From the NCBI RefSeq assembly GCF_001194135.2, contig NC_069006.1, positions 21,749,710-21,813,709 of the forward strand: a stretch of DNA of 64,000 nucleotides, given 5' to 3'. The DNA comes from Octopus bimaculoides. Lineage: Eukaryota. A program made the position numbers and the translations under genes. A model generated the notes under the pieces. The model saw nothing but the letters and a program-made list of their open reading frames with translations, was not told the origin of the DNA and did not search any database. Positions within the stretch are counted from its first letter, which is position 1, and every line of letters starts with the position of its first letter. Below, piece after piece: positions 34,268-64,000 of this stretch.

Positions 34268-34307
<40 letters not shown>

Positions 34308-36420: not shown

Positions 36421-36909
36421 AGGCTATGGAGGTCCACCAGAATAGAATAGCAATCAAATGGGTCCATAGGCAAAAAATGGTTGAGAACCCCTGCCCTAAA
36501 TGTGATATGCCATCAACACCCTTTAGTTTAGTATGCCTGTGAGACATTGGTCATTTCGTCATCATTTAATGTCCATTTTCCCATGCTTGCATGGATGAGA
36601 GAGAATTTCTTGAGACTGATTTTTTTCTACAGCTGGATGCCCTTCCTGTCATCAACCCTCACCTGTTTTCGAGCAACGTAATACTTCTCCATAGTTGGAC
36701 TTGTTTTTCATGGAAGACTGGGAATGAACAAACTTGCTTGAATGATGCTGCTCGTGCTGCCAACTTATGACCATCACACAGTGTCTAGACAAAGGCACAC
36801 ACACACGCACGCTTACATACTAGACACTGTTTTCTTGATAATAATAGGGTTTGAGTTTTTCTCTTTGCTATTAAAAAAGAGAGACAATATCAAAGGATTC
36901 TTTCATATT

Positions 36910-37878: not shown

Positions 37879-38030
37879 TGCGTACGAGTAGGAAAAACGT
37901 TTATCAAAACAACACGGTTAAGGGAAGTTTAAGGTAAATGTCACTTTCTTCTTCTCTTTGTGCGCTCACGTGTTTCAAAAAAGAAAAAAACTTGTGTTCC
38001 ACACATGAACACACATAAGCATACATACAT

Positions 38031-38067
<37 letters not shown>

Positions 38068-38433
38068 TTTACGATGGCTTGAAAAGTAGAGCTGCCTAAT
38101 GTTGTGCCTTCATTTCACGCTCACTAACGCAGCCGTTCCACACAGGAACCCGATACAAATAAGTATAAGAGGAAGACGAAAAAAAAAAGAAAAAGGAAAG
38201 AAAGAAAAAAACTGCTGGCAATCAATTCGATATGATCGACTAAAAAACATCTCAAAAATATTGCCACCGCCGCCAACATTACTGCAGTCAAATGACAGGA
38301 AACAGCGAGAGAATTAAGAGAATAAATAATAAATAATATGTATTTATATAGGAGTATACGCGTATGTGTACATATATATATATATTTATGTTTGTATATG
38401 TATACATTTACACAAACACACATCATGTGTATA

Positions 38434-38469
<36 letters not shown>

Positions 38470-38532
38470 AGCAGAAGCATATATACTCATATTTTGAATT
38501 CTATATTTCCTGTTTGCATCTCTCTCTCTCTA

Positions 38533-38565
<33 letters not shown>

Positions 38566-38599
38566 TACACACACACCTATCTATCTATCTACCTGTCTG

Positions 38600-38631
<32 letters not shown>

Positions 38632-41352: not shown

Positions 41353-41416
41353 AAAAAATATGCACACCATCCGTTTTCGGTGTAACTCTAACCCTAAACA
41401 TTGGGTGTGCGTATTC
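41353..41416 (+). repeat. ~65-bp mini-element: TAYGCACACC...GGTGTGCGTA termini around TAACCC repeats
   Basis: A second copy lies in reverse orientation at 54031-54097. Confidence 0.7.
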
Positions 41417-43621: not shown

Positions 43622-43655
<34 letters not shown>

Positions 43656-45253
43656 ATAGGGAAATAGATAGATAGATAGTTATATAGATGGATAGATAGA
43701 TAGATAGATAGATAGGTAGAGAAGATGTGTTTTGAGTTATATAATCCAGTCCAGTAAGCATGAATCGTGTGGTAACAGTGATATAAAATATGTTATAAAG
43801 ATGAGAGAGAGAGAGAGAGAGAGAGAGAGGAAGGGAGAGACAGACAAACAGATGTCCTTACTTGAAAAAGAAAGAGAGGAGGAGGAGGAGGAGGATAATG
43901 ATAATAATTATGGTGTTGGTGGCGATGGCGATACACACACACACACACACAAATTTCTTTTTATTTCTTTGGCTTCAGTCGAAATGCAGCCATGCTGGGG
44001 CACCACCTTGAAGGTTTTTAGTCCAACAAATTTTGTTTCAAGACTACTATTCATTGCTTNNNNNNNNNNNNNNNNNNNNNNNNNNNNNNNNNNNNNNNNN
44101 NNNNNNNNNNNNNNNNNNNNNNNNNNNNNNNNNNNNNNNNNNNNNNNNNNNNNNNNNNNNNNNNNNNNNNNNNNNNNNNNNNNNNNNNNNNNNNNNNNNN
44201 NNNNNNNNNNNNNNNNNNNNNNNNNNNNNNNNNNNNNNNNNNNNNNNNNNNNNNNNNNNNNNNNNNNNNNNNNNNNNNNNNNNNNNNNNNNNNNNNNNNN
44301 NNNNNNNNNNNNNNNNNNNNNNNNNNNNNNNNNNNNNNNNNNNTGATTTAGTATTCGGCTCACGATCATAAAGTCGTGAGTTCGATTCCTATGTCCTTCA
44401 ACAAGACACTTTATTTCACGTTGCTCAAGTGCACTCGGTTGGCAAAAATAAGCTGTACCTGTATTTCAAAAGAGGAAGGGAGAGACAAAAAGATATCCTT
44501 ACTTCAAAGAGAGAGAGAAAGACAGAGAGAGAGAGGAGGAGGGGAGGGTAATCATAATTATGGTGTTGGTGGCGATGGCGATACACACACACACACACAC
44601 AAATTTCTTTTTATTTCTTTGGCTTCAGTCGAAATGCAGCCATGCTGGGGCACCACCTTGAAGGTTTTTAGTCCAACAAATTTTGTTTCAAGACTACTAT
44701 TCATTGCTTCAGTTTCTTGCCGAACTGCTAAGTTACAGGATGTAAACAAACGAATGCAGGTTGCCAAGTAGTGGTGGTAGGGAGACACACAGACAGACAG
44801 ACAGACACATATATATCTATGCATATCACATGTGTACACAATAAAGATGAATGAAGGTATATCAAATATCACACAATTCTCGATTTTTATTAAAATGATG
44901 TTCCCTTCGAGAGAGAAGAATAAACGAATGGTTTATGATGAGAAGAGGAAATAATGTTAAAGAAGAAAGAATTGTTTGAACTCGGCATGTCATTATGGAA
45001 ACGGTAACCTGATTGACTGGAGACAAAAGGGACAGAGTTGCAAGGCAAATGCCAGCCTCAATAAATATTGGCAATGAAGATATGGAGGTGTTCTACTTGT
45101 CTCCAACGTAGGAGGTACTTAGACAAACAAAAAAGGTTAGAAAGCATTTATTGGCCCAGGGTAGCAATATACAAACATATGTGCATGTATATATATATAT
45201 ACAGTGAGTCTTGCAGCAATTTACTTAGCCCCCTCAAGACACACACACACATT

Positions 45254-45473
45254 TGAGGGGGTGCTGAAAAGGTCCTGGTTTGGGTTAAAAAAAAAATACA
45301 GGGAGATTAGTTAATTATGATTTTATCCAACATGTTTCCCTCTCAGGTTCACACACTTATTGAAGCAGTCCTTCAGTTTTTCTAAGCCTTTTCAAAGAAC
45401 TTGGAAGATTGGGTCTCCAACCAAACCTTTTGCGATACCTTTTTGAAGCCACCAACTCTTCAGTATCCCCTTA
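45254..45473. mobile_element. Second, more decayed copy of the same mariner-type MITE
   Basis: Colinear with 19302-19522 (TGAGGGGGTGCTGAAAAGGTCCTGG...TTAATTATGATTTTAT...CTTCAGTTTTTCTAAGCC...). Confidence 0.75.
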
Positions 45474-45783
45474 TGCTTATGTTGGTGTGTTTATGTCCCT
45501 GTAAGTTAGCAGTTCGGCAAAAAAAAAAAAGACCGACAGAATAAGTACTAGGCTTACAAAGAATAAGTCCTGGGGTCGATTTGTTCGACTAAAGGCGGTG
45601 CTCCAGCATGGCTGCAGTCAAATGATCGAGACAAATAAAAGAGTATACACGCACACACGGGTACATATATACATGTACACACACATACAGATACATCTAT
45701 AAAGACATACATTCTCACATATACATAAACATCTACTTATATATATATATACATACATACATTCATATACAAAGATGTGTGTG

Positions 45784-45827
<44 letters not shown>

Positions 45828-45857
45828 CATACATACATTCATATACAAAGATGTGTG

Positions 45858-45891
<34 letters not shown>

Positions 45892-46037
45892 CATACATAC
45901 ATTCATATACAAAGATGTGTGTGTATNNNNNNNNNNNNNNNNNNNNNNNNNNNNNNNNNNTATATATATATATACATACATACACACACTTATGCTTACA
46001 CACACATATGTTCAATGATACACATATGCATACATAT

Positions 46038-46071
<34 letters not shown>

Positions 46072-49000
46072 CGATATACCCATAGATATACACCTCTAAC
46101 GTACATGTGTATATTTTATAGCACAGATAATGTGCCTGCTTTACAAGAGATAGACTCTTTCCATATTATCAGATGATGATAACGATAAAAAAGTTATTTG
46201 AAATGTTATGTGTAAATGGTCACGTAAAGGATAGAAATTCTGGTCTCATTTTCATGTTGTTTGTTTTTTTGTTTTGTTTTTGTCATATTCTATTGTAATA
46301 CAGTAGCAAGTGATGATTTGAAAACATGATATATTTGGACAATAACATCATCATCATCATTGTCATCACTATCATGATCATAATTGTCATTGGCATTATT
46401 ACTGTCATCATTACTGACATTATCATCATCACCAACATTATTGTCAATTATCATTGTCGTCATTGTCACTGTCGTCATCATCATTATCATTATCGTCATC
46501 ATCATCGTCGTCATCGTCATCATTCTAATGTCCACTTTTCCATACTTGCATGGGTTTCATCTTTTGCTTGTTTCAGTTAACATAATGTGGCCATGCTGGA
46601 GCACAGCTTCAATGAATAAAAAAAAAGTTGAATGGTTTGACCCCAGTACTTTTTTGTTTTTTTAATGTCACAAACAATCACTCACTCTTTCCATAATGAA
46701 TCATTGATTAAATCATTAAAGAGACAAATCAGGTAACTTTCACTTTCACTTCATAAGCATTTAATGCCAATTTGCTTTTCATTTTCACTTCTGCACTCTT
46801 GCTCTTCAGTGGAAAGTAAATAACTCTTTCTTTCTTCTACCTTGTGGTCTTTATTCTGTATCTCTGTGTTCAGAGTTCAAATCCTGCTGAGATCAACTTT
46901 GTCTCTTATTCTTTTTCGCAGGTGAGTAATATAAGAAAAAGGCTAATCTAGGGCAGTGGATTAGTAGAGCTATAAGAACATTAAATCAAATGTCTTGCAG
47001 TTTCTGTCCTAGTTCTTTGTGTTCTGAGTTTAAATACTGCCAGCAGATTTAATCTGTCGTTTGGTTTTGCACCACTAACTAACACTTTGGATGCTTTTAG
47101 TGGAATCTCCTCTATTGTAAGCATTCATGCTAGGATGAACAACAGCCCCTAAGACTAGAACTGATTTCAGGGCCTTTGAGACAGGTGTGAAACTCGAATC
47201 CTGGTCCAAACTTTTACACAAGCATGGCTGTGTGAGTAAGAAGCTTGCTTCCCAACTATGTTGGTCTATGGTTCAATCTCACTGCACAACACGTTGGGCA
47301 AGTGTCTTCTTATATAGCCACAGACCAACCAAAGCCTTGTGAGGGGATTTGATAGACAGAAACTAAAAGGAACATGTTGTATATGCATGGTGCCTTGTCT
47401 TGACATCATGTGATGGTTGTAAATGGGCATCACCATCATACAAGTGATGTTTGTTTCCAGCCTTTTATCGAACCATGGGGAAATATCACTTTGTCTGGTA
47501 ACATGTGAGGGTTGGCAACAGGAAGGGCATCCAGCTGTTGAAGATCTGCCTCAATAAATTCCATCTGACCTATGCTACCATGGAAAATGAATGATTAGGA
47601 TGATGAGGACAGTCATAACTTAGAGCTCGAAATGTTTTAAGATTTCACTCCCCACAACAACTGAACTTATTCAACATTCCACGAACTCTTCATTAAACGA
47701 ATAAGTTTGATCCCTTTAGGACCCAAGTTCAAACGCTATTGGGCACATTTTTTTTTTGCTTTCCTGGGGGTAGATTGCCATCATCATCATCGTTTAAATG
47801 CTCACTTTTCCATGCTTGCATGGGTTAGATGGAATTTTGTCAAAGCAGATTTTCAACAGCCAGATGACCTTTCTGTCACTAACCCACAACTGTTTCAAAG
47901 CAAGGTAAATATTTCCCCACGACCAAACAAGTCTTCGTGAAAGATTGGCAACGAAGAACACCGCTTGCATGACGGTGACATTCGCTTACAACTATCACAC
48001 GATGGAGACAATATAACACACGCACACACACACACGTATGATCCGGGCTTGTTTCACTCACAAAGCTTTGGTCGGCACGGGACTATCCATTGTAGAAGTC
48101 ACTTGCCCAAGGTGCTGCGCAGCGGGACTGAACCCCAAGCCCACACGGTTAGGAGGCAAGCCTCTTGACTACACAGTCACGTCTGCGCTTATGAATTAAT
48201 AATTTCGCTAGAATGAAAATTAAACCTTCTTGAAAAATTAAAATTAGATTAATTAGTCATCAAACTCCCACCTCCCAGAATAAAAGAGTTTCTTTTAATT
48301 ATTCCAATGTCCCATGTTTTTGTTTACATTAAGTAGCAGAAACTGAAGTGTTTGGTTACAAGTTTTAGTTTTCCTCAATGGCACGGATTGTTTCAAGTAC
48401 TAGGTCAACTTTTGATCAAAAGGAATTGTTGCCATGACCATCACGTCTTTTTCAGGAGATATCTATGAATATTATTGTCCAACGAGCCTGTCCCTGTTTA
48501 AGGCAGTGGGGATGTGTGATTAACATAGATCTGGCTACTATTTCCAGCAGACTGAGCAACCACGTGGAGGCACTTTCGTTGACCCGGATTGTATAGTAGC
48601 TGTTTGTTTTCCCCCCACCCGCCCCCCTTAGGTCACACTTTCATTGAGCGTATAACCGTGATCAAAGCAAAGAAATTCATTCAAACCATGACCAATCCGA
48701 GAAAGAAGTGTTATCGAAAGGAAGGAGGCAGACGAAAAAATGCCAAAAAAGAAAATGAAATAATTAGTTTCAGAATCGTAAAAAAAAAAAAAAAAAAAAA
48801 AAAAAAANNNNNNNNNNNNNNNNNNNNNNNNNNNNNNNNNNNNNNNNNNNNNNNNNNNNNNNNNNNNNNNNNNNNNNNNNNNNNNNNNNNNNNNNNNNNN
48901 NNNNNNNNNNNNNNNNNNNNNNNNNNNNNNNNNNNNNNNNNNNNNNNNNNNNNNNNNNNNNNNNNNNNNNNNNNNNNNNNNNNNNNNNNNNNNNNNNNNN

Positions 49001-49617
49001 NNNNNNNNNNNNNNNNNNNNNNNNNNNNNNNNNNNNNNNNNNNNNNNNNNNNNNNNNNNNNNNNNNNNNNNNNNNNNNNNNNNNNNNNNNNNNNNNNNNN
49101 NNNNNNNNNNNNNNNNNNNNNNNNNNNNNNNNNNNNNNNNNNNNNNNNNNNNNNNNNNNNNNNNNNNNNNNNNNNNNNNNNNNNNNNNNNNNNNNNNNNN
49201 NNNNNNNNNNNNNNNNNNNNNNNNNNNNNNNNNNNNNNNNNNNNNNNNNNNNNNNNNNNNNNNNNNNNNNNNNNNNNNNNNNNNNNNNNNNNNNNNNNNN
49301 NNNNNNNNNNNNNNNNNNNNNNNNNNNNNNNNNNNNNNNNNNNNNNNNNNNNNNNNNNNNNNNNNNNNNNNNNNNNNNNNNNNNNNNNNNNNNNNNNNNN
49401 NNNNNNNNNNNNNNNNNNNNNNNNNNNNNNNNNNNNNNNNNNNNNNNNNNNNNNNNNNNNNNNNNNNNNNNNNNNNNNNNNNNNNNNNNNNNNNNNNNNN
49501 NNNNNNNNNNNNNNNNNNNNNNNNNNNNNNNNNNNNNNNNNNNNNNNNNNNNNNNNNNNNNNNNNNNNNNNNNNNNNNNNNNNNNNNNNNNNNNNNNNNN
49601 NNNNNNNNNNNNNNNNN

Positions 49618-49670
<53 letters not shown>

Positions 49671-49947
49671 ATATATGTGTATATGGAAGGGTCCTTCTCG
49701 TATGAGTACTCTAGATCATGTAAATCATACGCACACATATAATTTTAACGCATTTCTACAATTCTATCATGCTTTATATTTTCAAAATTATATGATCGAA
49801 AACAAACACTTAAGCTCAGATTATATAGCCTATATGTGTGTATATATAGTCTCTAACGCATTCAGTACTTTTTCACGCTTGTAAACACCAAACGTAGGTC
49901 TATATACGCGCACACAATAGTCTTATATACATGCCGTAAAAAGGTTC

Positions 49948-49985
<38 letters not shown>

Positions 49986-50297
49986 GTACACGTATGTATG
50001 TATATGTGTGTATAAATGATAGCAAGAATCATGAGAGCGTCGAGGAAAATCCCTTTCAGTACACATCGTGGCCTCCACATTGTGAGTTCAAATCACTCCA
50101 GGGTCAACTTTGCGTTTCATCTTTTTAGGGGATCAACAAAATAAAAGTCCCCGTCAAGTAATTGAATCGATTAAATCGATTAATCACTTCTGGCAAAATA
50201 TCTAACCTCATGTCTATTAGAACAAACAATAATCATATGAATTAATATTATTATTGTTATTATATAAATGAAAGCAAAAAGAAAAAGGAGAACCTAC

Positions 50298-50506
50298 TAG
50301 TGGTCAAGGTATTGTCTTATCCATTCCAGACATTCTCCTTCTACTTCGCATTGTACGATGTGATCGTAAAACAATTGTATTTTTTTGTCTTGTTCGTCTT
50401 CGGCAAGATTCGAACCTCCGGTCGATCTTCTCTTTGATCTCAAATGCTGACAGAAATTATCCAGAAATCGTCGGTAAGACTGTACATCGTTGCCGTAGGA
50501 TGCCAT
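50298..50506 (-). CDS. PPM1E: First coding exon of a PPM1E/PPM1F-family Mg/Mn-dependent PP2C phosphatase (POPX1/CaMKP-N-like)
   Basis: ATG at 50506 gives MASYGNDVQSYRRFLDNFCQHLR...IVQCEVEGECLEWIRQYLDH+TA, followed by a GTAGGT donor at 50297. It matches recalled human PPM1E [23 protein letters not shown]...[21 protein letters not shown]: YRRFL at residues 11-15 in both, EVEGE motif, and a phase-2 intron in the Tyr codon as recalled for human exon 1. Probably the single invertebrate pro-ortholog of PPM1E/F. Confidence 0.85.
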
Positions 50507-50732
50507 TCCGGTACTTGTACTGGTGGTGGTCGGCAGCGAACGGCATTCGCCAGACGACAACACAACATAGAGAGATTAAAAGCCTGTTTTCAAGCGAGGA
50601 TCAGTTATATATATGTATATGTATGTATGTATATTTATATATATATACATACATGTGTGTGCAGATGTATATAACAACGTACGGACAGTTTCTATCCTTC
50701 TATCCTCCTCTTTTCTGCAGAACGATTTTTCA
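50507..50732 (-). other. PPM1E: 5'UTR portion of the PPM1E first coding exon
   Basis: Strong minus-strand acceptor TTCTGTTTATTCACTTTCTTTGACTGCAG| with the exon starting at 50732 (a second CAG lies 18 nt downstream). This implies an upstream non-coding exon. Confidence 0.5.
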
Positions 50733-51438
50733 CTGCAGTCAAAGAAAGTGAATAAACAGAATCCAAAAGGAAAATTAACAACAAAAACAAAGCACGCTAC
50801 CTCCCCCTCTCACTCATTCTTTCTCTCTATCTGACACTGTGTCTTTTGCTCTTTCTCTCTGTCGCAGTTACCCTCTGCCTTCTCCTCCCTCATTCACACA
50901 ACTCTCCCTATTATTAATTTTACTCACTCCGCTACCCCTCTTGCTTTTTTAATCTCCGTCCTCTACTCGTCTTTCTCACCATCTCCCTATCGTTCTTTCA
51001 CCTTCTCTCTCTCTCTCTCTCTCACTCTCTCTCTCTCTCTCTCTCTTCAGCTACCTCTTACTCCTCCCACAACGACACACCTCCCGTCTAACTCTTACTC
51101 CTACTCCCACCTCCTCGCTCTTTATACACTTTTCTTTGCTTTTCTTTTTTCCTTTTCTTTCTTTCATTCTTTTCTCATTCAAGCAGTTGCCTTCCTCTCC
51201 TCTTTATGTTCCTGTTTCAAACTCTTTCACTACACACACACACACACACACACACACGTTTATATGTGTCTATTTATGATAAATGCATGTATGTAATATA
51301 GTATACAGTAATCTATAGATCTTAATCACGGGGCTTGATCAAACGGAGTTATATAGATTTATAAATATACACTATTTCATTTCCTGTGTCTTTTAATTTA
51401 TCTGCATAAATATGTATATACATGAACATATATATATA

Positions 51439-51473
<35 letters not shown>

Positions 51474-52949
51474 CATATGGTTTCTCTCTTACTGTCCCCC
51501 TGAAACTTACATGCCTCCTACACTCTCCTCCACTTCTCTCTCTCGCCATGTATATATAACACACACACACACACACATACACATACACCACTTCTATTCC
51601 GCCACCATTTGCCCTCCCCCATCTCTCCATATATAACTTTGATCGCCTACTCGCTTATCTCCCCTGCTATGCTTTCTCTCTCTCTCTCTCTCTTTTTCTC
51701 TCTCTGTTTGTCTGTCTCTTTCTCTGTCCCCCCTCTCTCTCTCTCTCTCTGTCCGCAAACTTCATTTCTGTATTTACTTTAATTTTCCTCTACTCATAAA
51801 TATATAGACATTTATCTTCTAATCTGTTTCATTTTATTCTATTTCATTTCACCGTTTGTTTTCTTTTTTCATTCACATTAATCTTGTTTTCTTTTTAAAT
51901 CTCTGTTCTATCAGTTATCTCTTACCCGAACCCCCACACCTATATCATCAGTTTCTTTTTATTCCAGCGTATATTTCCAAAATTTTAGGTGATGGGCAAC
52001 AGACGATTAAATTGTCCACAGTTACTTGACACGTGAGTTCGAATCCCACTCGAGACGATAGAATTAAGTACCGGTCAAAAACCGCGTAACAATATAATTA
52101 AATAAAACCCATCATACCTCTTCAAGTTAGTGACATTGTGCCGATGTTATCTATTTTACTAATCAAAGAAGAATGAAAGGGCACAAACTACTTCGACAAA
52201 ATTTAAACTTGGCGCATAAAGAATTTACGAATTACTAACATAAGTACAAGACCACACAGGCGAAAAGAAGCTGGTAGTATTTTCTTTTATTGACATGGGG
52301 GAAAAGGCAGGGTCGACCCCAACGTCTGCTGCATTTGAACTCACAACTTACAAAGTCTCTTGGCCTGCAACTTCGGAGGTGAGGCTAAGTTGGTTACATC
52401 GCACTCGATGTTCAACTGGTACTTCTTTTATCAACCCCGATAGGATGAAAGACAGAGCCGACCCCGCAGGCATGAGAGACTAAAAGAACTTCAAAAGAAA
52501 ACAAAGAAATAGCTGAAGGCTTGGGCCGTCTCAAAGCATGACCACACTGTGTTGTTCTCCCGGGTGAGGGTTGGGTTGGGGGGGGGGTCTCGCTGATTTA
52601 GACGGCCCAGTTTTGATCAACATATGTTGTGTGGCTTGATGTCAGTATAAATACTTATAGGGCCCAGTGCATTGATTAGCCCGGGGGTCTATAATGCTGC
52701 TTTAACGGCCCTGCAGAAGGCAGCAGGGGGGGATTTTTCGTTAATTCTTTCTTTGCATAATATATACGCGTTTTTCTACGTTGACCAACTTCCTTCCGTG
52801 CTTCTGTTCCGTTCTTTCTTTATTCTCTTTCTGACTGATGTTTTCCCCATATCTCCATGGCAATGTTTTGCCCCCCCCTCTCTCTCCCTCTCTCTCTCTA
52901 CATGATTATTAAACACTCCGCTGATGCAGGGAGCAGCCAGAATCGTTGG

Positions 52950-53140
52950 ATCGTCGAGCAGAAATGCTTAGCGGCATTTTCTTTCGGCTCTTCATATTCC
53001 GAGTTCAAATCCCACTGTGGTCTCCTTTGACTTCCATCTTTTCAGTGTCGATAAAAATGAAGTTACCAGTTCAAAGTACTCGAGTCGGTGTAATCACTCT
53101 GCGCCTCCCTTCAAAATTTCTGGCCTTATCCCCAAATTAG
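52950..53140 (+). mobile_element. SINE family B copy
   Basis: GCAGAAATGCTTAGCGGCATT...GAGTTCAAATCC...CAAAATTTCTGGCCTT. Confidence 0.7.
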
Positions 53141-53672
53141 AAAGGCTTTCATATCCCCCCACCCCACCACTTTATCTACTGTGGGGTTTTCTCTCTTATC
53201 TTGACTGCCCCCCTCCCCACAACACCGCCTCTTTTTCTTTCATTTCACTAATTTATTCGTTACGTTTAATCCCTTTCTTCTTTCCTTTATCCTATTCCTT
53301 CTGCCTGGACGTGTGTCAGTCACGTTACCTTCCTCCTCCCCTCTCTTTCTCTCTCTCTCTCTACAAACATTATTATTATTCCTCTCTCCTCTCTCTTTCC
53401 CTCCCCCTCTCTTCCTATATGTCGCTCTGTGTCTCCTCCATCTTTTTTCTCTTCTCTACATGTTACTCTCACTTTCCTCTTCCTACACTTCTCTTTATTT
53501 TCTTTGCTTCTTCTTCTTCTTCTTCCCTATGTCCCTCCCTCAGTCTCTTTTTCTCTCTCCTTCCCTTCACTTCTTTTAACCTCCCTCCCTCCCTAATTTT
53601 TATTCTCTTCTTTTTTCTTCCCTTCTCGCTTTCTCTCTCTCTCTCATGTCGTCTCCAAACACGCGCCGTCTA

Positions 53673-53766
53673 TTCTTACTCGCTTTCTCTTTTACACACG
53701 TTTTGATGACGTATTTCAATTTAGTGTTCTCTATTTTGGCGCCATCTCCAAGTGAGTTCTTTCAAA
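53673..53766. promoter_or_regulatory. Candidate core promoter / first-exon region shared by PPM1E and RAD51C
   Basis: TGACGT CRE-like site 53707-53712; E2F consensus TTTTGGCGCC 53734-53743 overlapping a YY1-like CGCCATCT; plus-strand donor CAA|GTGAGT (GT at 53752); minus-strand donor CGA|GTAAGA (GT at 53679); CpG-rich context. Confidence 0.4.
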
Positions 53767-53923
53767 ACTTTTGCTTACTATCTTATTCAATTCTGTCATT
53801 CTTAGTTCAGGCTAGAAATTCTTCTTATATACTTGAATCACTGTTTTCATTCTTCGTTTTAGAAATCTCATGCGTTTGTTACTTTATTAATATAATATAT
53901 ATCCCTTTTTTTCCTCCCTGTAC

Positions 53924-53959
<36 letters not shown>

Positions 53960-54030
53960 CATATATAATAATAATAATAATAATAAGAAGAAGAAGAAGA
54001 AGAACAACAACAACAACAATTATTGGTAAA

Positions 54031-54097
54031 GAAGACGCACACCCGGTGTTTAGGGTTAGGGTTACGCCGAAAACGGGGTGGTGTGCGTATTTTTTTT
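54031..54097 (-). repeat. Second copy of the ~65-bp telomere-repeat mini-element
   Basis: Reverse complement matches 41353-41416 apart from a few, mostly C/T, transitions. Confidence 0.7.
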
Positions 54098-54600
54098 TTA
54101 CCCAATAATTCTAGGATGAAATTTATAAATATTTAGGCCACTTTCGTTTTGACTTGCAGACATCATTGTTGTTCGTTAATTTCCGTAATTTTTATTTATT
54201 TATTTATTTACTTTTGTTTTAAAGCGGAAGATGTTTACGTGTGTGTATGAAACGGACGTGTGTGTATGGGTGTGTGAGAGAGAGTGAAGGGGTGTGTTGT
54301 CATGTACACATACATAAATTCATACGCTTACACCTTTTTTTGTATGTATGTGTGTGTGAGAGAGAGAGTGCCACTTAGACATCACCCTCTGCCTCTCATA
54401 CACAAAAACAGATGACTGCGGACGTATGTACGTATACGTGACAACCAACCCCTTCTCCCTCTCACGCATATGTCCATTTCATATACATCCACATGTATCT
54501 TTCACTTTCTCCTCTCTTTCACTCCAAAACAAAAGTTAATAAATAAATAAATAAAAATTACGGAAATTAGCAAACAAAATCAGCTGATCCAAATGACACT

Positions 54601-54693
54601 TCTGCGAGTCAAAACGAACGATCACCAATAGGCCTGCGAGTCAAATCGAAAGTTGACCAATCGGCCTGCGAGTCAAAACGAATGATGACCAAT
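54601..54693 (+). promoter_or_regulatory. Three tandem 32-bp units, each CTGCGAGTCAAA...CCAAT (candidate NF-Y box array)
   Basis: CCAAT at 54625, 54657 and 54689 (exact 32-bp spacing); CTGCGAGTCAAA at 54602, 54634 and 54666. The repeat itself is certain; regulatory function is inferred. Confidence 0.55.
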
Positions 54694-54705
54694 ATTTAAG
54701 AAATC

Positions 54706-55081
54706 GCTACACGCGTTTCTACAAATCACATGATTATGACATCAGAGTCGATATCCCTGGGATTCGAACAGTATAGTCCGTTTTTTCCGTGGGCATCTGG
54801 TTGATCATCATCATCGATTCATTTCATCGGGCGATACTGCCTTATTGGATGAATCACAAATTGATGTTTTATCCCTTCGACATAGCTAGACTGGCCTTCA
54901 TACTGGTAAGAAGGGATAAACATCCCTCTGTGTTTCACTCAATAAGGCAGTAATGCCCGATGAAATGAATTTGTGATGAAGATCAACCAGATGCCCACGG
55001 ACAATACGGAGTATACTGTTCTAATCTCAAGGATACCGAGTCTGATGTCAAAATCATGTGATTTGTGGAAACGCGCGTAGC
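54706..55081. mobile_element. Foldback/MITE-like long imperfect inverted repeat
   Basis: Arm 54706-54878 (GCTACACGCGTTTCTACAAATCACATGATT...ATCCCTTC) pairs with arm 54910-55081 (GAAGGGATAAA...ATTTGTGGAAACGCGCGTAGC) around a ~31-nt loop. No clear target-site duplication. Confidence 0.75.
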
Positions 55082-55394
55082 TTTATAAATTCCATCCTAG
55101 AATTATTATATTTGTCTTACATTATATTGGTATAACCATGATGCAACCCTGAAAAACTGACTTACTGGTCAGAATCATTAGACGGTAGCCGGCATAATGA
55201 AATAGCTTATTTGCATACCCCTAACGTTACTATAAACACATGCACTATATATTTGTTCTTCACTTCAGATTTATTATTCTTACATAATTGCCCTTTGAAA
55301 ATCCTTCGTTACACGTCCTGTCGCCTCTTCATGCCATGTGTCTCCTCCTGTTTAGTCTAGTTTGTCTTTCTATGGTGTGTATCCTTATCTGAGC

Positions 55395-55600
55395 ATGAAT
55401 TGTTAGCATGCCAGGCAAAAAGGCTTAGCGGTATTTTGTTGGTCGCTGCGTTCTGAGTTCAAATTCCGCTGAGGTTGACTTTACCTTTCATCCTTTCAGG
55501 GTCAATAAAATAAATACCAGTTGAACACTGGGGGTCGATATAATCAACTCATTCCCTCACCCCGAAAAGCTGCTACCCTAGTGGCGAAATTTGAAACCAT
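55395..55600 (+). mobile_element. SINE family B copy
   Basis: TTCTGAGTTCAAATTCCGCTGAGGTTGACTTTACCTTTCATCCTTTCAGGGTCAATAAAATAAATACCAG. Confidence 0.75.
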
Positions 55601-56285
55601 TATTATTATTATGAGAATGATGGTGATGATGATAATCTTTTTCTTCATCATCATCATGCCGATCTTGATGTTATATAGATTTTTCTGTTAAAAGCCCTCG
55701 CTCTTGCTTCTTGTTGATTTGTTAGTATTGATCTCTCATATCATTTCCACTGCAGATTTCGAAATTCGCTGCACTGGAGATTATATAAGACATCACAAAT
55801 CATCGAGTCATTTGAGCACCCACCAACAAACAAACCTACCAACCAACCAACCAACCAACCATCCAACCATCCAACCAATATGATTGTGTGGTTATGATTT
55901 TTGTTTTGCATCTATGTATGGCAGTCCAGATCTGACTCTGTTTTGCATTACTTTGGGCAAAAGGATGAAAGGCAAGGTCGACCTTGGTGGAATTTGAACT
56001 CAGAACGTCTTTAAGATGGATGAAATGCTGCTAAGCATTTTTCCCGGTGTGCTAATGATTCTACCAGCTCACCACTTTTAGTACTTGTATAATATAAAGC
56101 ATTAAAAGAATTCTTATCATCTGTCAACCACCCATTCATTGACACAATTCCTATGCATCTTTGCATCAGTGACCAAGTTTTAGTTGTTGGACAACATTTT
56201 TGTGGCATTATAGTTTGTGTGTGTTTGGCTGCGTGTCTATATATACTAGCATGATATAAAAGTAAAAAAAAAAGTGACTATAACA

Positions 56286-56320
<35 letters not shown>

Positions 56321-56358
56321 CAGTGTACATTTAAACACATAAGAGATGTTCATAATAG

Positions 56359-56397
<39 letters not shown>

Positions 56398-56398
56398 G

Positions 56399-56436
<38 letters not shown>

Positions 56437-56523
56437 NNNNNNNNNNNNNNNNNNNNNNNNNNNNNNNNNNNNNNNNNNNNNNNNNNNNNNNNNNNNNNNN
56501 NNNNNNNNNNNNNNNNNNNNNTA

Positions 56524-56647
56524 TATACATTTATAAACATAATTAAGAGATCAGCAAACATTTGCTTCACCACATACCGAAGTTCGAACTTCGGTATGTG
56601 GTGAAGCAAATGTTTGCTGATCCCTTAATTATGTTTATAAATGTATA
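56524..56647. repeat. 124-bp palindrome with no spacer (one mismatch)
   Basis: Arms of 62 bp centred on TTC|GAA at 56585/56586; the only mismatch is 56548 vs 56623; abuts an N-gap. Confidence 0.85.
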
Positions 56648-57264
56648 AGAACTTTTAAATAAGTTCTCCACCGATAATGGTGTTTACATACCGAAGGGCT
56701 TGGTAAAAATTATTAATTGTTGATTTATTAATAAATTAATAAATTGATAAACCGTTACCCTTTTAATTGTGTGTATATTTATATATATATATATATATAT
56801 ATATAGATAGATAGATAGATAGATGGGTAGATAGATAGATATCTCTCTCTGTGTGTGTGTTTTAAATAACTGAAATGATTCTTCCACAGTGTAATTGTTT
56901 CAAGACACTCGACAAACAAATACAGCTCTACCGAATATATTAGTATTTGTTTACCGTAAAAGTCAATAGACAACATATTTTCATATATATTTTGGATGTT
57001 TTGACTGCTCCCTCTAGCGTGTAAGGCTGCCTATCAAGGGTCGCCTCTTTTGTGTTTAAATGTACACTAATTTTATATGAAAATATGTGATATGAAGGTT
57101 GACAGGCAGCTGGGGGGAGTAGATGTGACTGTGAGACGTGTGTGGCCTTGGGGTTAGTCCTAGCATATAGCACCTTGGACAAGAGTCTTCTGCTATAGCC
57201 CTAGGCTAACGAAAGCCTTGTGAGTGAATTTAATAGACAGAAAATGAAAGGAATCCATTATATC

Positions 57265-57429
57265 ATCATCATCATTATCATCATCGTTTAACGTCTGCTT
57301 TCCATGCTAGCATGGGTTGGACGATTTGACTGAGGACTGGTGAAATCGGATGGCAACACCAGGCTCCAATCTAATTTGGCAGAGTTTCTACAGCTGGATG
57401 CCCTTCCTAACGCCAACCACTCCGAGAGT
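57265..57429 (-). mobile_element. Young SINE family C copy (5'-truncated)
   Basis: 148 bp with 4 mismatches to 63073-63220. Confidence 0.85.
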
Positions 57430-58049
57430 ATATATATATATATATATATGTATATACTCCCTTTTCTCCTTCCTTCTCTTTCTTACAGTCTGTCTCTTAT
57501 TCCCACTTTGTCTCTCTCTTCTCTCTCTCTTCCTCTCTCACTCTCTTATGTAACCTTTCACAGTCTATCTCCCTCTATCTGTTGCATTCTTCCACTCTCT
57601 TAGTCTGTCTCTTCCACTCACCCATTCTCTTAATCTTTCTCTTTTACTCCCTTTTCTCTCACCCCCCTCCCCCACCGTCCCCTTTGTGCTGGAATCCTGC
57701 TGCTCCCGTTTTCTGTCTACAACCTGTAATCCTTTTTTTAGACCAGGTTTATTGGGAGCCAGCTCAAGCAACAACCAAGTAATGGATAACTATCTTATTT
57801 CCACTTACTTCTTTTACGCCATAAATAACCATGCCACCATCTTTTTTTAAAAAAAAAAGAACACACAGCTATAGACACAGGTGTGGTTGTGTGGTAAGAA
57901 GCTTGCCGAGGTCAACTTTGCCTTTCATCCTTTCGGGGTCGATAAATTAAGTACCAGTTGCTCACTGGGGTCGATGTAATCGACTTAATCCCTTTGTCTG
58001 TCCTTGTTTGTCCCCTCTATGTTTAGCCCCTCGTGGGCAATAAAGAAAT

Positions 58050-58545
58050 AAGAAGCTTGCTTCCCAACCACATGGTTCCAGGTTCAGTCCCACTGCATGG
58101 CATCATGGGCAAGTGTCTTCTGCTACAGTTCTGGCCAACCAAAGCCTTGTGAGTGGATTTGGTAGATGGAAACTAAAAGAATCTTGGTATGTATATACAT
58201 GTTTGTGTATGTGTGTGTTTTTTGGTGTTGTATAACAGTTATGAATAGCCAGTGGCTTATTAACATTTAACTATTAGCAACGGATGCAGCATTAATATCA
58301 AAAGGCAAACTTTATATCCTACTTAACCTTTTTGATACCCCCCCCCCAACTCACATATATGTATGATGGGCTTCTTTCAGTTTCCATCTGCCAAGTCCAC
58401 TCACAAGGCTTCCATTGGCCCAGGCTTCCATTGGCTATAGTAGAAATTCACTCAGTGTCTTCTACCATAGCTGGTGTCACACAGAGGGACTGAACCCAGA
58501 ACCATGTGGTTGGGAAGCAGGCTTCTTACCACACAGCCATGCCTG
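58050..58545. mobile_element. Two family A SINEs in opposite orientation
   Basis: (+) 58050-58185 and (-) 58375-58545. Confidence 0.75.
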
Positions 58546-60059
58546 CACCTATGTATATGTGAACACACACACACATACTATGATGCATGCATAGACAGAT
58601 GCATAAATGTATAGGTATATCAGCCAATAATAAAATTATCAAGGACATTGTTGTTGTGCGGCACCAGGCCATCCGTGATGGAGCCAATGTATTGCAAAGG
58701 GCATTCCAGCCATCATCATTTGGCTGAAATTATGCAATGTGTCCTAAGAAATTTGGCTGATAATTTTAGCAAGTTGAGTAAGCATGGTAGGAAGAATGTT
58801 TATCAGTGCAGTGTGTACTTAATGACACTTCTGTTGCAATGATGCCAATTTTAACAGATTTCTTAAAAGTAGAGCAGATGCTAAGCCAGATTTTGTCACT
58901 CACTGACGCAGAGAGAGATAGACAGACGGATAGATAGATAAATAGATAGACAGATAGATAGATAGAGAGAGAGACTTATGGAGGTACATGCACACACACA
59001 CACACATACACACACATGCATGCATATATGCTGGTGCAGGCATCGCTGGATTGTTTAAAAAGTTCACTGTGAAGCCATGTGATTTCAGGTTTAGGAAGGA
59101 TGGTCAGTTTTGGCATTCCAATGGTTAATAACATTAAATAACAGTCATTTGATTTGACTTTGCCCCCCCCCCCGATAATTGCCAGTCTTGTGCCCGAATT
59201 ACAGTCTATTTTATTTTTGTTTTCAACTCGGTGTTATTTCTAAACTCAAGGAATGTTTNNNNNNNNNNNNNNNNNNNNNNNNNNNNNNNNNNNNNNNNNN
59301 NNNNNNNNNNNNNNNNNNNNNNNNNNNNNNNNNNNNNNNNNNNNNNNNNNNNNNNNNNNNNNNNNNNNNNNNNNNNNNNNNNNNNNNNNNNNNNNNNNNN
59401 NNNNNNNNNNNNNNNNNNNNNNNNNNNNNNNNNNNNNNNNNNNNNNNNNNNNNNNNNNNNNNNNNNNTATATATATATATATACATGCACACATATATAT
59501 ACATATGTATATATATATATATATAAACAATATATGAGTATATGCATATATATGTACATGTATGTACATACCTTCATCTACATGTACATATAGATACATA
59601 ACTGGGTACATGACGTAGCAAAAGAACATGGACAAAATGATAAACAAGGTACAACAAACAAGCAAGCCACATAGAAACATCTCCTTCATCAGCTGCCACC
59701 ATTAAAACACCGCAAGATGGATGCTAAATTATATATATATATATATATACATATACACACACACACACACACACACAGTTATACACACATGCACAAACAC
59801 ACATACATATACATGTATACTTTTTTGCAAATATCTATATTAATGAAAGATATAAACAGATATTTTAACTGATAAGGCATAGTTTTTAAGAAGACTTGGC
59901 TGTTATTTGTAGTAGATCAAGCAACCATGTGGAGGCATCCACATTGTTACTTAGCCTTGGTTGAGCAGATCTAACATCAAAAGCAATCCAGTTGTGCCCA
60001 CTGCATTCTTTGTTCTGTTGTTTAATGAAAAGCTTGCCTAGGACTGCATTCTTGAATGT

Positions 60060-60935
60060 CTCCTGGCCTTCAGTTTTTCTAAGGCAATAAAAATGTGATT
60101 TGAAGGAGATTTGGCTGATATTTAAATCAGGCCATGTAACTACACAGAAGGTTCCTGTGTTAGCTCACCCACCGTATCTTTAGTTATATGTTAACGAGAA
60201 CAGAGACAGGTTTCATAAAAAACACCAAGGTGAAATGGAAAACATTATGCCCCAGCCTTCTTGTTTCTAAGACAAAATAATGTAATTTCTGCGAGATTTG
60301 GCTGCTATTCAAATCACGCCAAATGACTACATAAGAAAGCTCCCACATTAGCTATCATGTTAAAGGGGGCCAATACAGGTTTAATTAAAACATCAAGGTG
60401 GAATGGGGAGCAGTGTCTCCTTGTCTTCTTTGTTTTCTAAGGCAAAAAAAATGTGATTTGAGGGCCAAATGACTACACAAAAGTTTCTGTGCTGGCTCAC
60501 TAACCCTGTCTTTAGTTGTATGACAATGAGAATCAGCACAGGTTTAATAAAAATATCAAAGTGGAATGGAAAGCAATGTGTCCTTGCCTTCTTCTTTTCT
60601 AAAGCAACAAAATGTGATTTGAGGGAGGTTTGGCTGCTATTTAAATCAGACCAAATGACTACACAAAAGGTTTGTGCTGGTTCACTCACTCTATCTTTAG
60701 TTATATGGCAATGACAGCCAACACAGGTTTAATAACACTATCAAGGTAGAATAGAGAGCAATTTGTTCTGGTCTTCTTATTTCTTTTTAGGCAAAAGTAT
60801 GTGATTTGAAGGAGATTTGGCTACTATTTAAATGATTACACAAAAGGGTCCTTTGTTTGCACACTCACCCCACTGCTATTGATATGGTAATGTGAGACAA
60901 GACAGGTTTGATATAACCACCAAGGTGGAATAGAG
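60060..60935. repeat. Diverged tandem array of ~5 units of 160-190 bp
   Basis: The motif AATGTGATTTGAAGGAGATTTGGCTG recurs at 60092, 60279, 60450, 60611 and 60798; each unit also carries ACAGGTTT..A and CAAGGTGGAATGG motifs. Confidence 0.8.
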
Positions 60936-60988
60936 TGAGAAATGACCCAAGGGCTTGTATTGTTAGTGGTCTGTAAAACAAGAACAAC

Positions 60989-61020
<32 letters not shown>

Positions 61021-61443
61021 AGAGAGATGTGGTTCAGTAAAATTAAAAGAAGCAATCTGCAGGAGGGGTGGGGGATGACGGGCGTGGCAGTGGGGGGTGG
61101 GGGTGAGACGACCCATTTATTTCGTATCAACAGTAGAAATTTAAATAATTAAATAATGACAATGTGGGAACGTGGCCTTGAGCAAATAACATCCTGCTCT
61201 CTCACTAGTATCTATTCACAGAAAATAATAACAACAAAACAACAATAGTAGTAATAGTAGTAGTACTAGTCATTATGATAATGATGATAATAATAATAAT
61301 AATAATAATGATAATAAATTCTGGGTTCAGTCCCACTGCATGGTACCTTGGGTAAGTGTCTTCTACTACAGCCTTGGGCAGACCAAAGCCTTATGAGTGG
61401 ACTTGGTAGACAGGAACTGAAAGAAGTCCATTATGTGTGTGTT

Positions 61444-61482
<39 letters not shown>

Positions 61483-62984
61483 AAGAATATATATGCATGT
61501 ATATACACATATATGTCCATACTTACATCTACATGTGTATACAGATGCATATCAGGGTACAGGACGTTAGAACAATGAACTACAGACAACGGAACGAACA
61601 CATAGGAAAACAGATAGCCACTTGGAATAATTCCTTCGTCAGCTGTCTCTATTCTAACTAGACGTTTTGAAGATAAGGCAGAACGTACTGTGTCTGTGTT
61701 TGTTCTCCCACCATCATATTTTGTCTGGCTTTACATTTTGAACTTAAATACCAGTTGAACAGCACTGGGGTCGAAGTAATCCATTTGGTCCCTCAACCAA
61801 AATTACTGGCCTTCTACCAAAATTTGGGACCAGTATTATACTTTACTAAAATTTGGCAAGCGTGCAGAATTGTCAGTATGTTGGGCAAGTTGCTCAGCAT
61901 CATTTTGTCCATCTGAACGTTCTGAGTTCAATTTCTGTTGAGGTTTACTTTGCCTTTTATCCTTTTCAGTTGATGAAATGGATACCAGTTGAGTACTGGA
62001 GTCAATGTAATAATGGACCTAATCCCTCCCCTAAATTGCTGACCTTGTGCAATTTTTTTTCTTCTTTGCTTTAGTTCTTTGATAATTACCCAAACATGAA
62101 ATTATAAAATTGAATTAAAAATTGTTTTCTCTCAGAACAGATTTAGCAAATATAAAATTTAGTTGAAATTTTTTAAAACACGAAAGAATTAAATGTAATT
62201 TTATAAGCAAGTAAAATGCATCCAGTCCAGAGGTATACAATTTCAGGAATTAATTACAGAAATAATTAAATATGTATTCTATGACATAATTTACTTCTAG
62301 TGTTTAGATTAAAGAGTCAGAAAAATTCCAATAATGATATTTTGTTTCAGTTCAGTAATGTTGATCTCTGGCGATTTAAATTCCTCATCATCGTTAGGCA
62401 TCTGGGATTGGTTAGGAATTAACAGATTAAACATTGGTGTGTGTTTAAATATATATATATATGTAGTATTTTTGCTGCTATTTCTAGCGAGTAGATGTCC
62501 TATTATAGGCGTCTCTGCATTTCAAATGAATATATATATATATATATATATATTCTTATTCTTTTCTTTCATTTTTTTACTTGTCTCAGTCATTTGACTG
62601 TGGCCATGCTGGAGCACCGCCTTTAGTCGAAGAAATCAATCTCGAGACTTATTCTTTGTAAACCCAGTACTTTATTCTATCGGTCCCTAAGTCACGGGGA
62701 CATAAGCACACTAGCATCAGTTGTCAAGCGATGTTAGGGGGACAAACACAGAGACAGAAATACATACAATGCACACACATACACACACACACACACACAC
62801 ACATGACAGCCTTCTTTCAGTTTCTGTCTACCAAATCCACTCACAAGGCTTTGGTCGGCCCAAGGCTATAGTAGAAGACACTTGCCCAAGGTGCCATGCA
62901 TCTCATTTTAACACATATATTTACCATATTGTTTTGGGACTTGAGATTATCAGGCAAGTGTTCTGTGCATCAGATATGATGCAC

Positions 62985-63237
62985 CTGGACTGGCTTGTGC
63001 GGGTGGCACATAAAAGACACCATTTCGAGCGTGGCCGTTTTCGTGCGGGTGACACGTAAAAGCACCCACTACACTCTCTGAGTGGTTGGCGTTAGGAAGG
63101 GCATCCAGCTGTAGAAACTCTGCCAAATTAGATTGGAGCCTGGTGTTGCCATCCGGTTTCACCAGTCCTCAGTCAAATCGTCCAACCCATGCTAGCATGG
63201 AAAGCGGACATTAAACGATGATGATGATGATGATGAT
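62985..63237 (+). mobile_element. Young SINE family C with RTE-like 3' tail ending in (GAT)n
   Basis: ...GTTGGCGTTAGGAAGGGCATCCAGCTGTAGAAAC...CCAACCCATGCTAGCATGGAAAGCGGAC.TTAAACGATGATGAT; near-identical copies at 24744(-), 36097(+) and 57265(-). Confidence 0.85.
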
Positions 63238-63594
63238 CCCTCATTTTATATGTTCTGAGTAATGTAATAAGTTCCAAGTTACTCTGGTGGTTGAAAATAA
63301 TTGACATAGACACCAAAGAAATATGTTTCATATATCACATGTGATACACAGGACAGACAGTGGGTTAACATGAACCTCAGGAGGATCTGTTGTATGGGTC
63401 ATATGTACTACCCCTCCTCTGACTAAATAATTGAAAACAATAGTTATATGTTGTTGTTATTGTTTCTATTCAGTCACAGCTCAGTCCTCAATTGACCAGA
63501 CATACGGTCAGGAATGTCCAGGTTAATGTATGGTAAAAAGTAAAATGCATGGAATTGTTTTTGAATTTCTATTCTTTCTCATCCTACCAACAAG

Positions 63595-63639
63595 GATTTG
63601 GTTCCTGAATGAACCCTCAAAGAGGTAAGCCCCTTGAAA
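63595..63639 (+). other. RAD51C: Putative RAD51C 5'UTR segment following a splice acceptor
   Basis: Pyrimidine tract TTTCTATTCTTTCTCATCCTACCAACAAG ends at 63594. There is no promoter-like CpG-rich DNA nearby, so an upstream non-coding exon is likely. Confidence 0.4.
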
Positions 63640-63763
63640 ATGCAGAACCAACGAGAAATCAGTTCTTTCCCTTTACCACCGAACTACCAGAGCAAACTGC
63701 TTTCAGCTGGATATTTGATTGTTGATGACTTGAAAGATGTAAAACCATCTGAACTAAGTGAAG
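63640..63763 (+). CDS. RAD51C: First coding exon of DNA repair protein RAD51 homolog 3 (RAD51C)
   Basis: MQNQREISSFPLPPNYQSKLLSAGYLIVDDLKDVKPSELSE+G then GTCAGT donor at 63764. It aligns with recalled human RAD51C [40 protein letters not shown] and has the same phase-1 intron position after KPSELSxE. Confidence 0.92.
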
Positions 63764-64000
63764 GTCAGTATATGTGTGTGTGTGTGTGTATAAATATTTC
63801 TTTGCTATGTACACCAGAAGTAGTAATAGTTTAAAACAGCAATTTGTCATCATCATCTAATGTCCATTTTCTCTGCTGGTGTGGGTTGGACGGTTTGACA
63901 AGAGCTGGCAAGCCAGGGGACTGTGCCAAGGTCTGTCTGTTGTTTGTTTTGACTGTTGTGACATGGTTTTTCTACAGCCAGATGCCTTTCCTAATGCCAA

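Follow-up and report, generated by a model that had tools for sequence, protein, structure and literature searches.

Head-to-head arrangement of RAD51C and PPM1E/F in Octopus bimaculoides and the probable bilaterian origin of the linkage

Introduction

A stretch of 64,000 nt of the Octopus bimaculoides genome (NC_069006.1, positions 21,749,710 to 21,813,709, forward strand; hereafter the window) was analysed. Only two coding exons were recognised in the window, and they were divergent: exon 1 of a gene of the PPM1E/PPM1F phosphatase type (PPM1E/F) on the minus strand and exon 1 of the DNA-repair gene RAD51C on the plus strand. This locus raises the question of whether the two genes have been neighbours since an early ancestor, and what may have kept them together. 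An initial annotation of the window had read the linkage as older than the protostome/deuterostome split and had taken its retention as a sign of constraint. That interpretation was partly supported by the present analysis, and its main inference was largely borne out.

Identification of the two first exons

The plus-strand exon comprised 41 codons and 1 nt, giving a phase 1 end at the donor GAAG/GTCAGT (coordinates of all features are given in Table 1). When its 41-aa peptide was compared with the PDB, the only significant matches were RAD51C chains (E=5e-6, 9e-6 and 2e-3), and the best of them covered residues 10-47 of human RAD51C (8faz_C, E=5e-6). In the reverse direction, tblastn of a human RAD51C sequence on the window detected the exon at E=1.5e-7. 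The exon was 45-63% identical to RAD51C exon 1 of Lingula, Solemya, Haliotis, Owenia, and Lottia (E 3e-9 to 5e-15). Its phase 1 end lay opposite human residue 48/49; the exon 1 matches of Lottia, Owenia, Lingula, and Solemya stopped at human residue 48, and exon 1 of Haliotis aligned end to end with the window exon. The boundary of human RAD51C exon 1 is presumably at c.145. Judged by its sequence, the plus-strand exon is RAD51C exon 1, and it carries exon 1 sequence only, with the ATPase core past the end of the window.

The minus-strand exon comprised 69 codons and 2 nt and ended in phase 2 at the donor GTAGGT (GT at 50297-50296). Human PPM1E matched it weakly and not significantly in tblastn (E about 1); therefore, the identity of this exon was established through an orthologue from Argonauta hians. 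Word-indexed protein searches with either exon peptide singly gave no match. An exhaustive HMMER scan with a joined chimera of both exons led to a 914-residue Argonauta hians "protein phosphatase 1E-like" protein, whose first 70 residues matched the exon (E=2e-30). In tblastn, the exon was 87% identical to residues 1-67 of this protein (E=3.6e-32). The Argonauta protein contained a full PP2C domain (PF00481) and shared 44% identity with human PPM1E across 398 residues, which took in the pre-domain region common to PPM1E and PPM1F.

Alignment of exon 1 from 11 named orthologues, the Argonauta protein and a Logan transcript contig revealed the shared pattern Y/F-R/K-x-F-L ... E-V/I-E-G-E-x-L ... 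Q-Y-L. The phase-2 donor fell in the same alignment column in 9 of the 11 other species, while for Lingula and Solemya the simple test gave no decision. The split codon TA/N at the exon end was found in the window (CAC TA/GTAGGT), in the bird Cyrtonyx, and in Saccoglossus. Since intron positions and phases were kept, the first exons themselves were considered orthologous for both genes. From these similarities, the minus-strand exon is assigned as exon 1 of the one invertebrate gene that is orthologous to both PPM1E and PPM1F of vertebrates. The initial annotation had described two divergent first exons, PPM1E-like (-) and RAD51C (+), 13 kb apart, and both identities proved correct by the PDB matches, tblastn, the Argonauta orthologue, and the exon phases.

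The search for further exons of either gene by tblastn with Argonauta hians PPM1E-like, a second PP2C-domain protein, and human PPM1E, PPM1F, and RAD51C yielded none in the window. PPM1E exon 2 was thus outside it, and PPM1E intron 1 is longer than 50 kb. The minus-strand exon marks the true start of octopod PPM1E, more than 50 kb upstream of exon 2. The public Octopus vulgaris model of "protein phosphatase 1E" (583 aa) begins within the PP2C domain (MTHLHCNMV...), without the N-terminal exons. The missing first exon is now supplied for such truncated octopus PPM1E gene models.

The peptide EVEGECLEWIRQYLDH (window 50300-50350) resembled, by chance, the alpha-2 helix of major histocompatibility complex (MHC) class I heavy chains (EGECLEWLRRYLE). 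This peptide gave about 160 weak PDB matches, the best with E=0.04. An MHC class I identity of the PPM1E/F exon was rejected, the PDB matches (EGECLEW..RYL, E at least 0.04) being chance matches. The resemblance might mislead automated annotation.

Gene order around PPM1E in other animals

Named PPM1E/F orthologues of many phyla were found with a profile of two cephalopod PPM1E sequences. The flanks inspected were 10 kb on either side of PPM1E, and a looser linkage may exist where RAD51C was not seen in them. The 11 other species were Owenia, Lingula, Haliotis, Solemya, Lottia, Cyrtonyx, Branchiostoma floridae, Saccoglossus, Ptychodera, Acanthaster, and Anneissia.

An annelid (Owenia), a brachiopod (Lingula), two gastropods (Haliotis and Lottia), and a bivalve (Solemya) all carried RAD51C beside PPM1E in the head-to-head orientation (Table 1). 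The Rad51-family genes of Owenia, Lingula, Haliotis, and Solemya were 40-71% identical to human RAD51C per exon; the match spanned almost the whole length of the human protein in Haliotis, Owenia, and Lingula, and two exons of the Solemya locus. In Lottia gigantea, a RAD51C gene absent from the gene calls was uncovered: a complete RAD51C lay between INTS2, the sole called gene upstream, and PPM1E at about 7045-9355 (-) of the locus on KB201206.1 (locus coordinates), with six tblastn exon matches to human residues 5-355. The stitched Lottia product matched human RAD51C in the PDB with E=2e-110, and the next RAD51 paralogue with about 1e-26. The head-to-head RAD51C/PPM1E pair dates back to the common ancestor of molluscs, annelids, and brachiopods or further.

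A gene with a CLAMP domain (PF14769, about 283-300 aa) was the tail-to-tail neighbour of RAD51C in Haliotis (1-670), Owenia (1-3604), and Lingula (1858-5061; all in locus coordinates), so that the spiralian block reads CLAMP-RAD51C-PPM1E(-TRIM37). TRIM37-like genes (B-box and MATH domains, 940-991 aa) were found tail-to-tail downstream of PPM1E in Lingula and two genes downstream of it in amphioxus. PPM1E and TRIM37 were tail-to-tail in Cyrtonyx as well as in Lingula.

The vertebrate segment differed from that of the spiralians in that RAD51C of Cyrtonyx was on the strand of PPM1E (tandem) and not head-to-head. Human RAD51C is head-to-head with TEX14. The initial annotation had stated that human RAD51C and PPM1E are direct neighbours. 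This holds for the published human order TEX14-RAD51C-PPM1E-TRIM37 (17q22-q23; PMC2360139 Table 3) and agrees with the tandem Rad51(+)-PPM1E(+) of the bird. RAD51C, PPM1E, and TRIM37 follow each other in the same order in human and Lingula. As had also been proposed, a single inversion of RAD51C interconverts the two layouts, from spiralian (-,+) to vertebrate (+,+). Gene order in other lineages had been named as a check of the linkage: gastropods, bivalve, and annelid were linked head-to-head, and so was the brachiopod, but amphioxus had no RAD51C in the flanks.

Table 1. Features of the window, gene order at the PPM1E locus of other species, and starts of the TGACGTCA element
Feature or locus	Position	Strand	Details
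PPM1E/F (CaMK phosphatase, POPX) first coding exon	50298..50506	-	ATG 50506, last base 50298
RAD51C first coding exon	63640..63763	+	ATG 63640, last base 63763
Spacer (intergenic or 5' non-coding) between ATGs	50507..63639		microsatellites and interspersed repeats
PPM1E intron 1, partial, >50 kb	1..50297	-	13 assembly gaps inside; exon 2 outside window
RAD51C intron 1 start	63764..64000	+	remainder of gene past window end
Assembly gap, 85 N	56437..56521		immediately after (TA)76 run 56287-56436
Assembly gap, 209 N	59259..59467		immediately before (TA)42 run 59468-59553
CpG-rich domain	48001..56000		observed/expected about 0.8-0.9 vs window baseline about 0.3-0.4
Owenia (annelid)			CLAMP-domain gene(+), Rad51-family(-), PPM1E(+); ATG-to-ATG 273 bp
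Lingula (brachiopod)			CLAMP(+), Rad51-family(-), PPM1E(+), B-box+MATH gene 940 aa(-), the TRIM37 architecture; ATG-to-ATG 294 bp
Haliotis (gastropod)			CLAMP(+), Rad51-family(-), PPM1E(+); ATG-to-ATG 1,681 bp
Solemya (bivalve)			Rad51-family(-), PPM1E(+); ATG-to-ATG 1,464 bp
Lottia (gastropod)			INTS2(-), uncalled RAD51C(-), PPM1E(+); ATG-to-ATG about 645 bp
Cyrtonyx (bird)			Rad51-family(+), PPM1E(+), TRIM37-like(-); RAD51C gene end to PPM1E ATG about 8.5 kb
Branchiostoma floridae			protein kinase gene upstream of PPM1E; TRIM37-like two genes downstream
Saccoglossus			CDK5RAP3 upstream of PPM1E; SIR2 and NIF3 downstream
Ptychodera			paxillin/LIM gene upstream of PPM1E
Acanthaster, Anneissia			Es2, PPM1E, SIR2
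TGACGTCA, Owenia	9967		approximate start, locus coordinates
TGACGTCA, Lingula	9765, 9932		approximate starts, locus coordinates
TGACGTCA, Lottia	9933		approximate start, locus coordinates
TGACGTCA, Haliotis	9834, 9931		approximate starts, locus coordinates
TGACGTCA, amphioxus	9849		approximate start, locus coordinates
TGACGTCA, two echinoderms	9855, 9655		approximate starts, locus coordinates

Promoters and retention of the pair

The start codons of Owenia, Lingula, and Lottia were separated by 273-645 bp, so that the core promoters of the two genes must share sequence in these species. Among conserved ancient pairs, 5'-5' orientation and spacers of <1 kb are over-represented (Irimia 2012, PMC3514665). 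Such an overlap of promoters would most likely be the force that retained the pair. The claim of the initial annotation that retention implies constraint fits these short spacers; it is weakened by the loss of linkage on at least two occasions and by the flipped orientation in vertebrates.

The only k-mer common to the compact spiralian spacers was the palindromic cAMP-response element (CRE) TGACGTCA. The perfect palindrome occurred 33-345 bp upstream of the PPM1E/F ATG in 7 of 11 species, with 9 sites compared with about 0.14 expected from the rest of the flanks. It was also present in amphioxus and two echinoderms, which have no RAD51C neighbour; for this reason TGACGTCA looks like an ancient PPM1E/F promoter element. 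It could possibly reflect CREB feedback onto a CaMK phosphatase.

In the octopod, the distance between the two ATGs was 13,133 bp, including 294 N. The CpG-rich domain extended over PPM1E exon 1 and into the spacer for 5 kb on the PPM1E side. Other CpG-rich stretches were located at about 36-44 kb and 10-12 kb, and the ratio was 0.2-0.4 elsewhere, the RAD51C exon included. The pattern suggests mosaic germline methylation, with the domain as a candidate unmethylated promoter region on the PPM1E side. A polypyrimidine tract followed by AG, resembling a splice acceptor, was found at about 63570-63595, about 45 bp upstream of the RAD51C ATG, and the RAD51C exon may be the second exon of its transcript. 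The CpG-poor RAD51C exon and the acceptor-like site would be in keeping with a RAD51C transcript that begins several kb further upstream, closer to PPM1E, and is spliced into this exon.

The explanation favoured here, which we hold to be fairly probable as a whole, combines an old head-to-head pair, a bilaterian block, promoter overlap, and expansion of the spacer in coleoids. Two unrelated octopod genes, the PPM1E/PPM1F orthologue (-) and RAD51C (+), face each other with their 5' ends in the window and are transcribed in opposite directions; in the bilaterian ancestor, the pair would most likely have been part of a RAD51C-PPM1E-TRIM37 block. Ancestrally, in a compact state, only a few hundred bases would have lain between the start codons, with overlapping promoters or one bidirectional promoter. 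A breakpoint between the two genes would then harm both, which is the usual account of conserved ancient microsyntenic pairs in 5'-5' orientation. In coleoids, reshuffling of the flanks would have brought a bZIP gene into the block without parting the pair, and the octopod spacer would have grown to about 13 kb by microsatellites and repeats resembling short interspersed nuclear elements (SINEs). A bilaterian origin implies that RAD51C was inverted in vertebrates, giving the tandem layout, and that the pair was separated in amphioxus and ambulacrarians, at least beyond 10 kb.

A serious rival to promoter constraint, although on balance an unlikely one, is neutral survival, in which the spacer, only a few hundred bases long, offers breakpoints a tiny target, spiralian genomes rearrange slowly, and no regulatory coupling is needed. 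We know of no functional link between RAD51C and PPM1E/F, and neither gene is a developmental regulator. Amphioxus, hemichordates, and echinoderms have lost the pair (at least within 10 kb), vertebrates have it inverted, and in the octopod the spacer became 8- to 48-fold longer through repeats and has no recognisable shared motif, all of which neutral survival would accommodate. It accounts less readily for a pair that outlasted the coleoid reorganisation while the other flank of PPM1E apparently changed (bZIP compared with TRIM37 in Lingula), and whose orientation was unchanged in six spiralian lineages of three phyla. The over-representation of 5'-5' pairs among ancient conserved pairs (PMC3514665) likewise favours promoter constraint over neutral survival.

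That a shared promoter constrains the pair is plausible for the compact genomes and unproven for the octopod. A further-reaching proposal, in which a single cis-regulatory unit has served both RAD51C and the CaMK phosphatase gene from the bilaterian ancestor onwards and is still at work in octopods, appears doubtful. The unit would be an overlapping or bidirectional promoter, possibly with the TGACGTCA CRE and with distal non-coding first exons in the CpG-rich 50-56 kb. Were this so, a gene of homologous recombination would be tied to a phosphatase of calcium signalling.

Age of the linkage

The RAD51C-PPM1E linkage is probably of bilaterian origin, and we place considerable confidence in this dating; common descent is much likelier than convergence because Lingula and vertebrates are collinear over RAD51C-PPM1E-TRIM37 and because amphioxus keeps TRIM37 near PPM1E. 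By a rough estimate, the chance that one named gene adjoins PPM1E in a linkage group of ~1,000 genes in random order was p about 2e-3, and the chance that RAD51C and TRIM37 both came to flank PPM1E independently in Lingula and vertebrates was p about 1e-6. The initial annotation had placed the linkage before the protostome/deuterostome split, which the TRIM37 collinearity makes likely.

Convergence, with a head-to-head pair confined to spiralians and a vertebrate tandem adjacency that arose separately in the same ancestral linkage group, is rather improbable. The differing orientations of spiralians and vertebrates would agree with it, and so would the absence of RAD51C from the 10 kb around PPM1E in all five non-vertebrate deuterostomes sampled and the presence of another shared PPM1E neighbourhood (Es2/SIR2/NIF3) in ambulacrarians, to which the Saccoglossus block among the rows listed by Robert 2022 can be added. 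Against convergence, TRIM37 is the tail-to-tail neighbour of PPM1E in Lingula as well as in bird and human and lies two genes off in amphioxus, and the independent assembly of a collinear order of three genes is very improbable.

Among the rows listed in the tables of Robert 2022, PPM1E appeared in a Saccoglossus block only (TGFB1I1-PPM1E-SIRT4-NIF3L1-LZTR1, dated to the bilaterian node), and RAD51C and TRIM37 appeared nowhere. The ambulacrarian PPM1E neighbourhoods differed from the spiralian one, with Es2-PPM1E-SIR2 in the starfish and the crinoid, PPM1E-SIR2-NIF3 in Saccoglossus, and paxillin/LIM-PPM1E in Ptychodera. In human 22q11, ESS2 and LZTR1 are found close to PPM1F, and before its duplication the vertebrate locus may therefore have had the two kinds of neighbourhood together.

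Several points weigh against the favoured explanation. The 10-kb flanks of PPM1E in Branchiostoma floridae, Saccoglossus, Ptychodera, Acanthaster, and Anneissia yielded no RAD51C by tblastn; among the sampled deuterostomes only vertebrates had the pair, and in the other orientation. If TRIM37 is ignored, two gains are formally as parsimonious as two losses. All sampled species were bilaterians other than ecdysozoans, so that bilaterian ancestry is likely but short of proof. Given the losses in several lineages and the vertebrate inversion, whatever constraint there is must be weak or limited to certain lineages. The octopod ATGs stand 13 kb from each other, and the spacer between them is filled with repeats, without a demonstrable shared element; TGACGTCA was absent from the whole 64,000-nt window (expected 0.5). 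Moreover, two assembly gaps fall in the spacer, and its length is therefore only an estimate.

Remaining explanations and the published cephalopod block

A genomic regulatory block, in which enhancers of one gene lie inside large introns of the other (bystander and target), is very unlikely. Long introns are a hallmark of bystander genes (PMC3514665), and PPM1E intron 1 is large in the octopod (>50 kb) and in Haliotis (about 40 kb). In Lottia, intron 1 was about 3 kb, and the pair was kept nonetheless. To our knowledge, neither RAD51C (a DNA-repair ATPase paralogue) nor PPM1E/F (a Ser/Thr phosphatase) is a trans-dev gene. A block of this type has a trans-dev gene as one partner, and here neither partner was a developmental transcription factor or a signalling gene of the kind that defines block targets.

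Supplementary Data 1 of Schmidbaur et al. 2022 (PMC9023564) contains block 14411 of O. bimaculoides (KQ425681:91001..200047), paired with block 14412 of Euprymna scolopes (Lachesis_group1:103524610..103918120). Both blocks are annotated bZIP; PP2C; Rad51 and are given as common to those two species only. Block 14411 is very probably the same locus as the window, and that record places PP2C and Rad51-family genes together in both Octopus bimaculoides and Euprymna scolopes. The cephalopod adjacency is thus already present in a published table (PMC9023564), and the statement of the initial annotation that the pair survived coleoid rearrangement was upheld by it. The bZIP gene of the cephalopod block stands where Lingula and vertebrates carry TRIM37.

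The published block covers two cephalopods only, whereas the core pair described here reaches gastropods, a bivalve, an annelid, a brachiopod, and vertebrates; a method based on blocks of three genes is blind to a far older core of two. That a block filed as cephalopod-specific has such a core calls for caution with synteny methods that need at least three genes. Full-text literature searches found no paper discussing RAD51C-PPM1E synteny.

A scaffolding artefact, with the exons wrongly joined across the N gaps of a short-read-style assembly, is hardly credible. The window contains 15 N runs, two of them between the exons, and cannot prove continuity alone, but both of these gaps border on (TA)n runs, as is typical of a local loss of reads and not of mis-joins. 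PP2C and Rad51 also lie in one block of the Hi-C-scaffolded Euprymna assembly (PMC9023564), as in that of O. bimaculoides, and the identical head-to-head order and orientation was found in five other spiralians. Both spacer gaps sit in non-coding DNA, so the reading frames are untouched.

Comparison with known classes of gene pairs

Adjacency of RAD51C and PPM1E was found in both protostomes and deuterostomes (octopod, Lottia, Haliotis, Solemya, Owenia, Lingula, bird, and human), which is the defining property of conserved ancient microsyntenic pairs (CAMPs). With the co-regulated 5'-5' type of CAMPs (Irimia et al. 2012, PMC3514665), the pair shares unrelated neighbours linked across the protostome/deuterostome split, divergent orientation, very short spacers in compact genomes, and an orientation kept in six spiralian lineages. 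It differs from that type in the changed orientation in vertebrates and in having no pair within 10 kb in five non-vertebrate deuterostomes. Bidirectional promoter pairs (Adachi and Lieber 2002, as cited in PMC3514665) resemble Owenia, Lingula, and Lottia, with <1 kb between divergent ATGs; the octopod ATGs are 13.1 kb apart. This comparison is by ATG distance, and the class is defined by transcription starts less than about 1 kb apart; in the octopod, the acceptor-like site before the RAD51C ATG hints at a non-coding exon further upstream.

Roughly 600 conserved ancient pairs have been published (Irimia 2012, PMC3514665). RAD51C-PPM1E is a new or re-found case of this class, fairly ordinary and with no new mechanism. 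It provides a well-documented and easily scored ancient-pair marker, with a head-to-head state in three phyla of spiralians, a tandem state in vertebrates, and a broken state in ambulacrarians and amphioxus.

Repeats and remaining sequence of the window

The ten most complex remaining open reading frames of the window gave no Pfam match above threshold, and no match to Rfam families was found in the window. Tandem Repeats Finder reported 23 rows of simple repeats in the spacer. At least 2,560 bp of the spacer had up to 11 copies elsewhere in the window. Two inverted repeat copies in the spacer, at 57265-57432 and 63070-63237, were 96% identical. These were copies of a SINE-like interspersed repeat that was also located at 36085-36351, and one reading frame of it gives GLVKPDGNTRLQSNLAEFLQLDALPNANHSES. 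A second repeat family had up to 11 occurrences in the window. At 60055-60935, degenerate copies of a unit of roughly 180 bp, 68-75% identical to each other, formed a tandem array that lay under the threshold of Tandem Repeats Finder.

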